Part shown: piece by piece, positions 38,701 to 56,700 of the stretch | Position numbering within the stretch: position 1 is the stretch's first letter | Layout of the letters: each line of letters opens with the position of its first letter | Assembly (NCBI RefSeq): GCF_001194135.2 | Contig: NC_069000.1 | Coordinates: 17,688,476 to 17,752,475 of the forward strand | Direction: 5' to 3' | Origin: Octopus bimaculoides | Lineage: Eukaryota | Length of the DNA: 64,000 nt | The notes under the pieces: model-generated | What the model was told of the DNA's origin: nothing | The model's database searches: none | The model's input: only the letters and a program-made list of their open reading frames with translations | Translations under genes and position numbers: made by a program

Positions 38701-41700
38701 GCACCACCTGTTGGCTTGAAACATCAACTTCCCCAGGATGGCTAACCCACTAGCAGATCTGGTCCTTCAACTTTGCAAGAGGAATCAGTATTGCTCTTCA
38801 AAGTTCCAAGAACTCCAACATAAAGAAGAATGGACTACATCAAATAAGCAAGAGGTTCTTACACTTCTAGCAGAATTATTCCTTCATCCAACATGTACTG
38901 AAGATGTAACATATTGTAGCAGTACAATTCTATTAGATTTGGTTGAGAGAGTAAAAAGCATGGTAGTAAGTAGTGAGAGCAGTCAGACCACTTCATTACA
39001 CCAAACATTCTGCATTGCTCTCAGTAAAGCTGTTAGTACATGCCCTTCACTTAAGAAATTTTTTATATTATATCTCAAAAACAGTTCACCTTTCTTGTAT
39101 TCAGAGCAAGATGTTACTGAACCAGCATCCAAAAAAATGAGGCTGGAGTACAGTCAGTTATCATTATCAGACTCCCATCCTTTAGAACTTGTCCAGACAG
39201 CTTATCGCTGTGTTGTGATTTTTGGTCGAGAATCTGAATCGGTAATTTCACCGGAACATTTATTACCATTTTTATCAAATGATAACAAAGATGTCCAGTG
39301 GTTTACTGTGCAGACACTTGCAACTCTTTTGCAGATGTCTGCACGCCAGCGAGATACTCTCATGAAGCGTTACTTTCAACGTGAAGAAATGGTCCAACTG
39401 ATGTTGCGCTATAAAAAGCTTCTGCTTTGGCCAGAGACGAATACCAATGACACTAGAGTAAATGGCAAACAGCTAAAGACTGCTACTTACCTGGCTGAAA
39501 ATAAACTCCTTGATTCACATGTTGTTTCTGTCAGTGGCATACTTCTTCCTAAAATTCTGAGAAAACCTCGAGGAATGGAATCAGAACTTGTATCTGTTCC
39601 CACCACAGATAAGAACTTGCAACGTCTAGCACATGAAGTTAACCTTGGTAATCCAGTACTACTACAAGGTCCTGTTGGGTGCGGCAAAACCTGCATAGTT
39701 GAATGTCTAGCTCAGATGACAGGTCGTCGGAAAAGCTCCCATCTACTAAAACTTCAACTTGGAGATCAGACTGACAGCCGAGCCTTGTTGGGCATTTATC
39801 AGTGTACTGATGTGCCTGGAGAATTTGTTTGGCAGCCAGGGATCCTAACACGAGCTGTATCTGAAGGTTATTGGGTTCTTTTGGAAGACATTGACCATGC
39901 TCCTATGGATGTTATTTCTTTATTGTTGCCCCTCCTTGAAAACAAAGCTTTGATGATTCCCAACCGTGGACAGAAAATAACTACCTCCCCTGGATTTCAG
40001 TTATTTGCTACCTACCGTACTCTTCCTGGCACCGGTTCATTTGTCAGTAGTTACAGTAGTGCAATGTCTGCACTATTAGAAAAAAATTGGACAAAGCTCA
40101 ATTTAGAACCATTATCTAAAGACGAACTTTATGAAATAATTTCCCAGAAATATCCTGCATTACATTCTATCATTGACCGTCTACTTGAAATTTATTTCTT
40201 GTTGTCACGTGGGGAACATGTGGGAATGATGGAAGTGGATGATGACAACAAATTCAATAGCAAGTTCTTTTCCCATGACAAACGATTAATATCAACCAGG
40301 GATCTCTTGAACTGGTGCAAAAGAATTGCTTGTTATGATTTAACATCCTCTGCAATTAGCCAACTTGTTTTTCAAGAAACTCTTGATTGCTTCTGTTTCA
40401 GCATCAGTTGCCCGAAACGTCGGTTGCAGCTTGCAGAAGCAATAGGTGCCAAGTTAAACATCACCAAATCAAAAGCCGAATACTACTGCATGAAATACAA
40501 ACCAAATGTGCAAATTTCCACTTATGAATTCCTAGTTGGAAGAGTTATCCTGCCTAAAATTAAACCTTCGACTAAACCCATAGAATCTTCTCACCACCGT
40601 CTGTTCTCTTTTACACGGCAGTCATCTGCTCTTTTGGAAAAAGTAGCTGCCTGTGTCCAAAACAATGATCCTGTTTTGCTTGTTGGAGAGACAGGAACTG
40701 GCAAAACTTCAACTATTCAGTACTTAGCTAATCAACTTGGACACCATTTACAGGTGATCAATATGAACCAACAGAGTGACAGTACTGATCTTCTTGGTGG
40801 CTTCAAACCAGTTGACCTCAAATTGGTTGTAAAACCGTTCAAAGATTCCTTTGAAGAATTATTTTGTAAGACTTTTTCTCGGAAGCAAAATGTTGTATTT
40901 TTAACTCACATTGAAAACTGCTATTGCAAAAAGTTTTGGAGAGATATGTTTACTTTGATGGAACATACCATTAAATCAGCCATAAAGAACCAGACTGAAA
41001 ATTCTGAGATGTGGATGCTGTGGAAAACTCAAGATAAGAAGTTAAAACAGCTACGTCTCCAAGTGCAGAAAACTGAAAGCACTTTAGCATTCACATTCAT
41101 TGAAGGAACTTTGGTGAAGGCACTAAAGAAAGGAGATTGGGTTCTTCTTGATGAAATCAACCTGGCCACTACAGAAACATTGGAATGTCTAAGTAGCTTA
41201 CTGGAAAGCAAATCTGGTTCTGTTGTACTTTCTGAACGAGGAGATCTTGAACCTGTGATCAGGCATTCAAATTTCCGTCTTTTTTCTTGCATGAATCCTG
41301 CCACTGATGTTGGTAAAAAAGCACTCACTCCAAGTGTGAGAAACCGTTTCATGGAATTTTATGTTGATGAGTTGAATGATGTTCAGGATTTGAAAGTGTT
41401 GGTGAATGATTATTTATCTGGTTTGTCATTGTCCCCTTCTCAAATAGATGGACTGGTCAATTTCTACATGCAAGTTCGTGTTCTAGCTACCAAACAGCTT
41501 ACTGACGGCACAGGCCATAAACCACATTACAGTTTGAGAACTTTCTGTCGTGCCCTGATGTGTGCATCATTTAATCCTGGCGGAGTGATAAATCGAACTC
41601 TGTATGAAAGTCTTTGTATGAGTTTCCTCACTCAATTAGATCGTTCCTCATACCCATTAGTTGAACAGTTGGTTTGTCGCCTACTGCTTCAAAAAGCTGA

Positions 41701-53700: not shown

Positions 53701-56700
53701 TCAACATGTAACTGAATCAACATCACATTACGAACAACAGATAATGGATGTAGCAACTGAGGATCAGCAGAAAGCTTGCGCTGCTGATTACGATGAGGAT
53801 GATGATGAAGACGACGATGATATCGAGTCCATTAAAGATTCAGATGCTTCATATTATGAAGAAGAAGACTTTGACGAAGACGATGATGACGAGGATGATG
53901 ATGATGTGGAGATGATTGAATCAAACATTGTTAAGAACAGTGTACAGCCGAATGTAATTGAAGAATATGTTCTAGACGATGACGACGACGAAGATGCTCT
54001 TGTTGAGGGTGATGAGTCACAAGTACAGGATAATTCTGTAGAAATACCAGGGTCAAAGGTGGTAACAGAAGGTACCAGCAGACCTCCTGAATCTTCAATA
54101 CACACTGTGATCAAGTATTTGGACAAAGAGGATATTGTTGATATGGAAGAACTGAGGGCAGAGATTGAAGAACAATTGTCTATTTGGTCAGCCAATCAGC
54201 ATTATGGCAATGTAGTTGATTTTGAACGACAAGCTAGTGAATTATGGCAGATGTACGAGCAGATGACAAATGCTCTCTCACAGGAACTATGTGAACAACT
54301 CCGCTTGGTTCTTGAGCCATCACAAGCTACAAAACTAAAAGGTGACTATAGAACTGGTAAACGAATTAACATGAAGAAAGTAATACCTTATATTGCCAGC
54401 CAGTTCCGTAAAGACAAAATCTGGTTGAGACGCACAAAACCAAGTAAACGTCAGTACCAGATTATGTTAGCAATTGATGATTCTTCCAGCATGATAGACA
54501 ACCATTCCAAGCAACTTGCATTTGAGTCATTAGCAGTTATTGCTAATGGTTTGAGTCTTCTAGAAACTGGTGAACTTGCCATTTGTAGCTTTGGGGAAAG
54601 CATGCAAGTTATTCACTCGTTTGGTGAGCAGTTCTCCTGCCATTCAGGAGCTCGACTTCTTCAGCATTTTACTTTCACACAAAAGAAGACAAATATTGCT
54701 TTGCTTTTGCAGCAAGCTTCTGCATTAATGATGGAAAGCCGTCAACATTACCGTTCTGCTCAATCGGGTCCTGATTTTTCTCAACTGTTGCTGATAGTTT
54801 CCGATGGCAGAGGTCTTTTTTCAGAAGGCATGGACTATGTGAAATCTGCTCTGCGGCAAGCACAAACAGCTAATCTTTTTGTTGTGTTCGTTATACTGGA
54901 CAATCCAATAAACAGAGATTCCATCCTTGATATTAGGATTCCTGTTTTTAAGGCATCTGGTCAGCTGCCAGAGATCAAATCTTACATGGACCATTTTCCC
55001 TTTCCATTTTACATCATTCTGCGTGACATTGACTCTTTGCCACAGACTCTTAGTGAAGCTCTCCGGCAGTGGTTTGAACTGGTTACTGCAGAGACACAGT
55101 GAGGTGACGTTTCTGTTGTTGCAAGATTTATAGAACTGTATTATTTGTGATTGGATTATTCTTCAAATCTTGCTATTCATTTCTTTTTCTTGGTTCTTAT
55201 TCATCTTTTTTTTTTATATATATATATTTTGTGTCAATCAAGCGAAGCCAATAAAAGCTATTTTGCTTATTAATATTGACAGTATCATTAGCTGCTAATA
55301 TGTCATCATTTTGTATTCAGTCCTTTTCATTTTGTGCTTATATTTGGCACTGTATTTCATCATTGAATCATTAAAATATTTACAAAGTATTTGTCTTTTT
55401 GGTGGTATCTCTGCTTTATGACACTGTTATTTCTGTTTTGTTTTCTATCAGTATCAGAGAGGAAAGAACAAGCAAACATATTTTGTCAACATGCAAATGA
55501 TGTCAGCATTTGACTGGTTTTGAAAATACGAGATTTTCAAATTAGACTGCACTTTTAGGTTGGGGAAAATATAGTTTTGACAATGTCAGACTAACAGTCT
55601 ATAATCAAGGTTACTCGTTATGTAGGAAACAATTTTTGTTAGGTTGTGGTAAATTATGGAAATCAAATTTTAGGAGTATTTACATCAGGCTCAGATGCAA
55701 AATATACTAATTGCTGTAGTGTACATCAAAGGAGAAAAACCTCTCTCTTTTATGATGCAGAGAATTCAAGGACACCAGTGTTTCAACATGTGCCTCTTCA
55801 GCTAGAAGTACTATGTGCCTTTGAGTCTAGCCAAGCAGCTGACCTGTGTTAATACTTTCAAAGAAGAGTTTGCTGATCAGAGTTTATATCTCCCAATCAA
55901 TATAGAATTATTTGCATATTCTTCATTAAGGAAAGACTTAGTATTTACAACCTTTTATATATCTTTCAATTTGGTAAGCATGAAGTCTAGTTGGATTTGT
56001 ATGTTAGCCTGATTGGTAGGTAATCAAGTGACTGGTCAGTGCCTGTTTCCTGAAGATAGTTCTGCATATGGTAAGTCATTTGCATCATTGAACTTAAAGA
56101 GCTTTTAATCTCTTTGTAGCTTCCATGTAATTTTCAATATTTAAGAGTGAGACCTTAAATGCGAAAATATATAAGTAGCATGAAGAGACAATTATTTGCT
56201 TAGCTAAGGCTAGTAAGTGCTACCGTTGCTAAGAAGTGGAGAAATATGCTGTTCATGAGCTGCAAATTTGAATATGGTATAAATTCTATATAAATGGATT
56301 AGAAAAAAACAATCGTCAACAATATTGCAGTTACTGGTTTTAAAGATGTTACTTTAACTTATTCTACGCATTGTCTATGCCACAAACCAAATGAAACTCA
56401 TAATTATATTCACAGGCTATCAAACTAACAAAGCAGTATTATTAATTGAATTTAAAAAAATTTCTCAGTTGCTAAAAAAGTTAGTGATGCTTTGATTAAG
56501 ATTGGATCAAAGAAAAAAACTACTTACATGTGAAAAATAATCAAATAGGCCTATAAAATACAATGAGAAAACAGAACACCACTTGGTATAAACTCCTGAA
56601 AGTGACATCACCATGTTAGTAGTAAGTAATTTCTTAAACCCTTTAGCATTCAGATTACTCAATCAAATGTAATATTTATTCACATTGTTTTTAATTAATT

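Follow-up and report, generated by a model that had tools for sequence, protein, structure and literature searches.

The stretch of DNA analyzed here, 64,000 nucleotides (nt) from Octopus bimaculoides (RefSeq assembly GCF_001194135.2, contig NC_069000.1, positions 17,688,476 to 17,752,475 of the forward strand; hereafter the window, whose own numbering is used throughout), holds three genes: a USP gene on the - strand, the complete gene for midasin (MDN1/Rea1) on the + strand, and the 5' part of NSUN2, also on the + strand. The midasin coding sequence (CDS), which in the outgroups examined is rich in introns, lies here in a single exon that is very probably nested in the first intron of NSUN2. 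An earlier note, made from the letters of the window alone, had described it as the probable outcome of reverse transcription of the full MDN1 mRNA.

The midasin coding exon

The MDN1 CDS occupies 38738-55102 (+), where the list of open reading frames (ORFs) in the window gives one frame that starts with an ATG, runs for 5,454 codons to a stop, and contains no introns. The second-longest genuine ORF within the window has 518 amino acids (aa), so that a chance origin of the 5,454-codon frame is excluded. Pfam assigns AAA_5 across seven stretches of the encoded protein (E = 1e-126), together with AAA_lid_7, AAA_lid_5, and MDN1_4th, and six Walker A motifs (GxxxxGK[ST]) are found at aa 311, 650, 1054, 1362, 1745, and 2060; six tandem AAA+ modules with P-loops are thus present in one polypeptide with the midasin lid domains. 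Farther along, a D/E-rich region (aa 4494-5112; 52217-54073, +) precedes a C-terminal MIDAS domain with the motif DxSxS (DDSSS) at aa 5247, and the last 350 aa match the solved Mdn1/Rea1 MIDAS domains 6or5 and 6qt8 (E = 1e-70 to 1e-82). These features are those of the midasin family, in which ATP-driven motion of the six AAA+ modules enables the C-terminal MIDAS domain to pull assembly factors off pre-60S ribosomes.

Two side observations belong to the 3' part of the frame. Among PDB entries, the MIDAS domain (window 54050-55099) is matched best by 8ql1_A (E = 3e-95, 279 aa), which carries the depositors' label "NDE1"; it aligns as a midasin MIDAS, and we take it to be probably a human MDN1 MIDAS construct despite that label. 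The marked purine skew at 52-54 kb (GC skew 0.33, AT skew 0.32) on the GAA/GAT-rich sense strand arises because the D/E-rich region is encoded there, and the same strand composition explains two antisense ORFs at 52260-53331 (-), of 251 aa and 160 aa, which are not genes.

The octopus protein, whose exact sequence is a 5,454-aa member of the O. sinensis midasin cluster, is 97% identical to the O. sinensis midasin-like protein, 83% identical to that of Argonauta, and 40% identical over its full length to that of Mya, with which, as with other animal midasins, it is colinear from end to end; over the AAA ring its identity to other animal midasins is 50-58%. Its nearest relatives outside the cephalopods are molluscs (Haliotis, Gigantopelta, and bivalves, at 54-58% over the AAA region), followed by other animals. 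Among its best 120 matches to annotated proteins there is no second full-length cephalopod midasin, and MDN1 is present there as a single copy. The window gene is a complete and ordinary midasin, whose protein has no unusual features, and it is best read as the sole functional midasin gene of coleoid cephalopods.

The single coding exon is not peculiar to one genome. It recurs in four independent assemblies, namely those of O. bimaculoides, O. sinensis (coding span 16,359 nt), Argonauta hians (16,503 nt), and the European Nucleotide Archive (ENA) contig ERZ21867824 (16,383 nt), which we assign to a decapodiform because its protein matches Sepia esculenta transcripts at 88% identity, with gaps at 31 of 5,472 aligned positions (1%). 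The Sepia esculenta MDN1 transcript contigs measure 16.7-16.8 kb and were independently assembled from at least five RNA-seq runs, three of which are Sepia esculenta libraries (PMC9538352, PMC10571815). All five coleoid MDN1 sequences are colinear, and the indels among them do not exceed 14 aa; no in-frame intron is therefore concealed in the ORF. Being common to Octopodiformes and Decapodiformes, single-exon MDN1 predates the octopus/squid split.

Synonymous sites of MDN1 are saturated between octopods and the decapodiform (pS 0.77-0.78). Within each group, dN/dS is low (0.12 for O. bimaculoides against O. sinensis and 0.10 for the decapodiform contig against Sepia), which indicates that MDN1 is under strong purifying selection, as the earlier note had supposed from the intact frame. 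On published cephalopod timetrees, the event that removed the introns would be older than ~250-300 Myr.

The MDN1 leader, its upstream exon, and NSUN2

To the 5' side of the coding frame, the Sepia mRNA agrees with the genome from a point 98 nt before the MDN1 ATG onward and, in an alignment of three genomes, departs from it precisely at a conserved polypyrimidine tract and AG. The corresponding octopus acceptor reads ctacttacAG immediately before AGGCTTTC, with the junction at 38639/38640. In the decapodiform contig, the 29 nt that open the Sepia MDN1 mRNA have their counterpart (23 of 29 positions identical) at the end of a conserved block lying 5.5 kb upstream; this is the sole match of at least 19/29 on either strand of the 36-kb decapodiform locus, and GTAATT lies directly 3' of it. 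The homologous octopus block ends at 29752 and is followed by a donor GTAAAT (AAG/GTAAAT; GT at 29753-29754). The predicted leader intron of octopus MDN1 thus spans 29753-38639 (+), or 8,887 nt with a conserved branch-point/polypyrimidine tract, and forms the 5' part of NSUN2 intron 1 described below; the homologous intron has 2,350 nt in Argonauta and 5,520 nt in the decapodiform.

MDN1 is accordingly not intronless as a whole: its coding part is without introns and its mRNA is spliced at a leader intron in Sepia and, judging by homology, in Octopus as well. The leader carried on the MDN1 exon extends over 38640-38737 (+), as placed by alignment with the Sepia mRNA. The 3' untranslated region (UTR) occupies 55103-55275 (+); its poly(A) signal, AATAAA, stands at 55250-55255, and ATTAAA follows at 55370 as a second one. 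Since the 3' UTR of Sepia runs colinear with the genome of the decapodiform, MDN1 has no 3' UTR intron.

Within the leader, a 20-nt core, TTCATGCAGTAGTGTTTGGC (38645-38664), is invariant among Octopus, Argonauta, the decapodiform genome, and the Sepia mRNA, in contrast to the saturated synonymous sites of the adjoining coding sequence. This core holds a mini-ORF, ATG CAG TAG, and is otherwise translated merely as the tail of an upstream ORF (uORF) that opens at the NSUN2 ATG; it may be an element of splicing or translation control.

The block that supplies the start of the MDN1 mRNA comprises a putative promoter region together with the 5' part of an exon (29547-29716, +), conserved in three coleoid genomes, and a short coding part (29717-29752, +). 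It is the sole conserved block upstream of MDN1 in Octopus, Argonauta (locus 7335-7562), and the decapodiform contig (4177-4365). It contains an invariant E-box, CACGTG, at 29615-29620, and a conserved motif, GTATGGCG(T/A)CG, lies just 5' of the E-box (29596-29625); the E-box and the GTATGGCG motif are consistent with a housekeeping promoter of the Myc/Max type. At the MDN1 acceptor, conservation extends just ~30-60 nt upstream, and no separate conserved MDN1 promoter is therefore evident.

Several features suggest that this upstream exon belongs to NSUN2. Its coding part would provide a start codon and 11 further codons and is in phase 0 at the donor. The exon contains the invariant ATGGGCCGCTGCCG, encodes the peptide MGRCRNRRSYRRDNR in the decapodiform, and has a start of the type MGRCR.RR... 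with a phase-0 end, resembling the N-terminus of human NSUN2 (MGRRSRGRR) and the MG[RK] start, followed by a basic stretch, of 35 of 81 full-length NSUN2-like cluster representatives. Downstream of MDN1, NSUN2 exon 2 (59475-59555, +; 81 nt) begins in phase 0 after ttttAG; it has no Met, and an in-frame TAG stands directly upstream, so that NSUN2 requires an upstream start exon. Joined, octopus exons 1 and 2 align from residue 1 with the third-best NSUN2 homolog (MGR---RKRHNKRN...). Exons 3-5, at 61888-61982 (95 nt), 62949-63056 (108 nt), and 63857-63962 (106 nt) on the + strand, likewise match human NSUN2; exons 2-5 together match it (PDB 21zh_A) with E = 4.6e-32, residues 19-142 against human 34-155, and exon 5 is 100% identical to the O. 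bimaculoides model A0A0L8FHP0. These downstream exons are conserved in all three coleoid genomes, and the comparison of those genomes gives no other conserved block between the MDN1 stop and NSUN2 exon 2. From this sequence evidence we regard 29717-29752, with considerable confidence, as the first coding exon of NSUN2. The same conserved ATG exon had been entertained as a conserved-peptide uORF specific to MDN1; it does not occur 5' of MDN1 in Physella or in either of two MDN1 mRNAs from outside the cephalopods, and we reread it as NSUN2 exon 1.

The Sepia transcripts bear on the same point from another direction. Logan assemblies use k = 31 (PMC12424806), and in each of the five Sepia MDN1 contigs the sequence begins exactly 30 nt (k-1) ahead of the first MDN1-specific base. 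This common start points to a break in the de Bruijn graph, and therefore to an exon 1 with two continuations.

On these assignments, NSUN2 intron 1 would span 29753-59474 (+; 29,722 nt) and enclose the whole MDN1 exon in sense orientation, as the corresponding introns do in Argonauta (20,991 nt) and the decapodiform (30,972 nt); the order USP, NSUN2 exon 1, MDN1, NSUN2 is kept in Octopus, Argonauta, and the decapodiform. MDN1 is thus very probably a terminal exon of 16.6 kb that sits within NSUN2 intron 1 and shares the promoter and first exon of NSUN2. The insertion is in the sense orientation, and the 5' end of the Sepia mRNA is the 3' end of the exon encoding the NSUN2 N-terminus (in Octopus by conservation), as in chimeric transcripts formed from host introns.

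We propose that one donor (29752/29753) serves two transcripts. Spliced to the MDN1 acceptor (38639/38640) and ended at the AATAAA at 55250, the transcript would be the MDN1 mRNA; spliced to NSUN2 exon 2 at 59475, with the MDN1 exon skipped, it would be the NSUN2 mRNA. In the former, a uORF begins at the NSUN2 ATG, which has G at both -3 and +4; in octopus it comprises 23 codons, with its stop TGA at 38673-38675, 62 nt before the MDN1 ATG, and across the three genomes this uORF has 23-24 codons and ends 62-82 nt ahead of the MDN1 ATG. Midasin would then be translated by reinitiation or by leaky scanning past the 23-codon uORF.

Much of the description in the earlier note stands after this analysis. 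Its uninterrupted 5454-codon midasin ORF with all domains is confirmed by the ORF listing and by the Pfam and PDB matches, and its multi-exon neighbors with short exons are seen again in the USP gene (-) upstream and in NSUN2 (+) downstream, whose exons 2-5 have 81, 95, 108, and 106 nt. The word "intronless" holds for the coding sequence, which has no intron, and has to be withdrawn for the mRNA, which would carry an 8.9-kb leader intron (spliced in Sepia and placed in octopus by homology).

Origin of the intronless coding sequence

To set the coleoid gene against its relatives, the exons of MDN1 in Physella acuta and Lineus longissimus were rebuilt by exact protein-to-locus matching. The Physella gene spans 91 kb with 104 coding introns and a median exon of 45 aa, and the Lineus gene spans 85 kb with 68 coding introns and a median exon of 66 aa; in Haliotis rufescens and Argopecten irradians MDN1 spans 157.9 kb and 117 kb, respectively. 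When the proteins are aligned three ways, 52-55 of the Physella introns have a Lineus intron within 1-2 residues, as compared to a mean of 3.6-5.9 coincidences and a maximum of 15 under random intron placement (500 trials). At least ~50 MDN1 introns are thus older than the molluscs and disappeared along the line leading to coleoids, and the ancestral introns with this history probably numbered ~100. The intron positions shared by Physella and Lineus therefore make the loss real and lineage specific. The earlier note would have been refuted by intronless or nearly intronless orthologs across molluscs and other lophotrochozoans, and the orthologs of Physella and Lineus are not of that kind. A loss that takes out all coding introns exactly is what a spliced mRNA leaves behind after reverse transcription, and it can hardly be ascribed to independent deletions in the genome. 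Nor is the nested arrangement seen in the four outgroups: Haliotis, Physella, Argopecten, and Lineus have no RsmB/NSUN gene that overlaps MDN1 or is closer to it than 10 kb. Intron-rich outgroups and the lack of nesting in all four of them support the proposal in the earlier note that the introns were lost together through a reverse-transcribed mRNA.

We judge it probable that coleoid MDN1 arose by an ancient retroposition of MDN1 mRNA into NSUN2 intron 1, followed by loss of the parent. For an apparent relocation that coincides with total intron loss, a single retroposition with parent loss is the simplest account. Before octopods and decapodiforms split, a fully spliced MDN1 mRNA of ~16.7 kb would have been reverse-transcribed and its cDNA inserted, in sense orientation, into NSUN2 intron 1; the AG 98 nt 5' of the MDN1 ATG would have been recruited as an acceptor for NSUN2 exon 1, and the copy thereby expressed from the E-box-containing housekeeping promoter of NSUN2. 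The parental gene, with its ~100 exons, would subsequently have been lost. As expected of a retrogene, the copy has no parental introns (0 coding introns as compared to 104 in Physella and 68 in Lineus, and none in the 3' UTR), and its sole intron lies upstream of the copied sequence. Retrocopies are known to gain expression by landing in a host intron and taking up the host exons that lie upstream; Carelli et al. count 13 such cases in human and 14 in mouse, for instance Taf9 in Ak6 (PMC4772013). Replacement by a retrogene also has a precedent in amphioxus SYCP1, which gained new 5' exons and co-opted a promoter (PMC5803294).

A number of observations weigh against this account. Neither a poly(A) tract nor target-site duplications accompany the copy: no A-run of at least 6 occurs within 1 kb of the MDN1 stop, and the longest direct repeats in the flanks are 10-mers, which equals the shuffled expectation. 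These relics are missing, in our reading, because the event is ancient, with synonymous sites saturated between octopods and the decapodiform. A processed insertion of 16.7 kb lies far beyond the retrocopy lengths known to us and would require unusual processivity of the reverse transcriptase (RT). The use of the upstream exon by octopus MDN1 is predicted from homology to Sepia and the decapodiform, in that exon, donor, and acceptor are conserved. Annotated cephalopod NSUN2 models do not include this exon and appear to be 5'-truncated or have another start: the Argonauta model starts precisely at the exon-2 acceptor, A0A0L8FHP0 of O. bimaculoides begins at "MEW" (exon 4/5), and the O. sinensis model has an 8-codon start at ~57.8 kb (window) that is not conserved. 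The truncation can be attributed to gene predictors, which disallow a gene nested in a first intron. Microsynteny apart from the NSUN2 nesting is uninformative because the neighbors of MDN1 (flanks of up to 10 kb) differ among the four outgroups themselves.

The earlier note had left open either retroposition or conversion of the whole gene by its cDNA; our results favor retroposition, and conversion in place is now the less likely of the two. In such a conversion, ancestral MDN1 would have stayed put and its coding introns would have been removed by recombination with one or several long cDNAs (Fink model), the 5'-most leader intron surviving because the first exon was too short for a crossover. 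The sole remaining intron is indeed in the 5' UTR, as 3'-biased cDNA recombination predicts (PMC2614967, PMC3629103), an essential single-copy gene altered in this way needs no new promoter, and the long stem lineage leaves time for several rounds. However, the gene would then be expected to have kept its ancestral site, promoter, and first exon, and the latter two appear instead to be those of NSUN2: the first exon that was kept is, by our assignment, NSUN2 coding exon 1, and MDN1 lies inside NSUN2 intron 1. The conversion model thus demands a ~100-kb ancestral MDN1 that was already nested in NSUN2 and used its first exon, whereas in 4 of 4 outgroups no NSUN gene overlaps or flanks MDN1 within 10 kb. 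We also know of no animal precedent for the removal of ~100 introns in situ, and we regard this history as unlikely.

It is still less probable that the change took two steps at the level of DNA, with the introns lost elsewhere by any route and the gene later rearranged into NSUN2 intron 1. In its favor, the hallmarks of retroposition are absent at the locus, and coleoid genomes, to judge from those published for squid and octopus, are heavily rearranged; yet two rare events are invoked where one suffices, and a copy of a processed mRNA would by itself account for the precise sense insertion of a single exon that brings along a poly(A) site and an acceptor fit for use. An artefact, whether contaminating cDNA or a faulty assembly, or the horizontal gain of an intron-poor midasin has the unusual structure alone in its favor and can practically be dismissed. 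Four independent assemblies show the same single exon with conserved flanks, which removes the former, and the nearest non-cephalopod relatives of the protein are molluscs at 54-58% identity over the AAA region, which removes the latter.

Retroposition followed by loss of the parent is thus our preferred reading. In its fullest form, toward which we lean with some reservation, an mRNA of ~16.7 kb would have been retroposed in one piece in the coleoid stem, taken over an essential function, and made a unit of two genes with one promoter, in which a regulatory uORF opened by the host ATG couples MDN1 and NSUN2 output through the choice of splice site and poly(A) site.

The remaining features of the window lie outside this unit. 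The USP gene (1930-23147, -) is multi-exon with a UCH domain encoded by exons at 1930-2163 and 4280-4528, a large exon at 14553-16109, and a first coding exon near 23009-23147; from its 1.5-kb exon (14553-16109) we take it to be USP10-like. It is a neighbor and not part of the unit, and stands head-to-head with the NSUN2/MDN1 promoter at a distance of ~6.5 kb, an arrangement also seen in Argonauta. The assembly has N-run gaps at 788-999, 16252-16637, 19658-20113, 33112-33145, 36796-37367, and 60801-60810, of which 33112-33145 and 36796-37367 fall within the leader intron; the MDN1 ORF is gap-free. The earlier note had seen remnants of RTE LINE elements near MDN1 and had read them as a sign that retroelements had been active here; these remnants could not be confirmed. 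The ORFs of at least 150 aa near MDN1 (36787-37407, 19574-20236, and 16183-16715) are artefacts, translated from N-runs, and Pfam finds no reverse-transcriptase or endonuclease domain in the large ORFs of the flanks. Fragments resembling transposable elements (TEs) do occur. Two copies of a Cys-rich segment, CxxC...IQCTQCKLWTHKRCS, with sub-threshold PHD/C1-like matches, are located at 24259-24555 (+) and 26549-27004 (+), and other fragments, among them 26015-26275 (-) and 62170-62280 (-), end in ...RPRGRPRMKW. Pfam gives no reverse-transcriptase domain for these TE-like fragments; we presume that those ending in RPRGRPRMKW resemble tails of non-LTR retrotransposon ORFs. A related TE-like copy lies in the O. 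sinensis leader intron (its own locus, 7636-8460). The event itself is ancient, and nearby repeats are uninformative about it. A search of the whole window with Rfam gave no match.

Significance and relation to known systems

A literature search on midasin/MDN1, retrogenes, intron loss, and cephalopods gave no report that links cephalopods to midasin or describes an intronless MDN1. The mechanism (retroposition into a host intron, capture of a host exon, and loss of the parent) is already known in kind; what is unusual is the scale (a 16.4-kb CDS and ~100 introns), the essential housekeeping role, and the age and conservation of the two-gene unit. If our reading is correct, MDN1 would be, to our knowledge, by far the longest functional retrogene described. 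A faithful and full-length copy of a 16.4-kb CDS, taken from the spliced product of ~100 exons, fixed in an intron-rich lineage, and held under strong constraint for hundreds of Myr, would stretch the limits of retroposition and would bear on the processivity of reverse transcription in the germline, and it would imply that an essential single-copy gene can be replaced by its retrocopy. The lone leader intron raises the question of whether an mRNA of such length depends on 5' splicing for its expression or export. With a promoter and first exon in common, MDN1, which acts in 60S maturation, and NSUN2, an RNA m5C methyltransferase, are predicted to be regulated together. The nested single-exon MDN1 also offers a discrete genomic character for cephalopod phylogeny, for which its state in Nautilus and Vampyroteuthis is of interest.

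The closest likeness in gene history is to amphioxus SYCP1, which, as coleoid MDN1, is multi-exon elsewhere and has one coding exon in the lineage concerned, with the parent gone (in SYCP1; for MDN1 this would follow from the proposed replacement). SYCP1 gained one or more new non-coding 5' exons and co-opted a neighboring promoter, and MDN1 likewise appears to use a borrowed one. The two differ in size and in what was captured: the AmphiSYCP1 coding exon has ~3.2 kb (PMC5803294), as compared to 16.4 kb replacing ~100 introns in MDN1, and the exon acquired by MDN1 would be the coding first exon of its host, whereas that of AmphiSYCP1 is a de novo UTR exon; the MDN1 event is, moreover, common to all sampled coleoids. 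Mouse Taf9 in Ak6 resembles MDN1 in the mode of expression, with a sense insertion into a host intron, one or more host 5' exons spliced to the retrocopy, and a single promoter. Retrocopies in host introns are, however, mostly young mammalian duplicates of ordinary size whose parents are kept (PMC4772013), while MDN1 is an essential housekeeping gene that has no visible parent and, on published timetrees, would be more than ~250 Myr old.

In its layout, the locus is most like the cholinergic locus, where the intronless CDS of VAChT lies in sense orientation in the first intron of ChAT (PMC3053374, PMC7524744), as MDN1 does in NSUN2. VAChT and ChAT share one or more upstream exons and their regulation by alternative splicing and polyadenylation, which MDN1 and NSUN2 may do as well. 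The cholinergic locus is ancient across animals and joins two steps of one pathway; MDN1 and NSUN2 are unrelated to those genes and are loosely linked to each other through RNA and ribosome biology. Intron loss by RT-mediated cDNA recombination (PMC2614967, PMC3629103, PMC2395259) is characterized by the precise and simultaneous loss of adjacent introns in a germline-expressed gene, and MDN1 is like these cases in that its sole surviving intron is at the extreme 5' end. After such recombination a gene still occupies its ancestral locus and keeps its own first exon, whereas the first exon of MDN1 is, on the present evidence, that of NSUN2. Set against the midasin family, coleoid MDN1 has the full architecture, and its gene structure alone differs.

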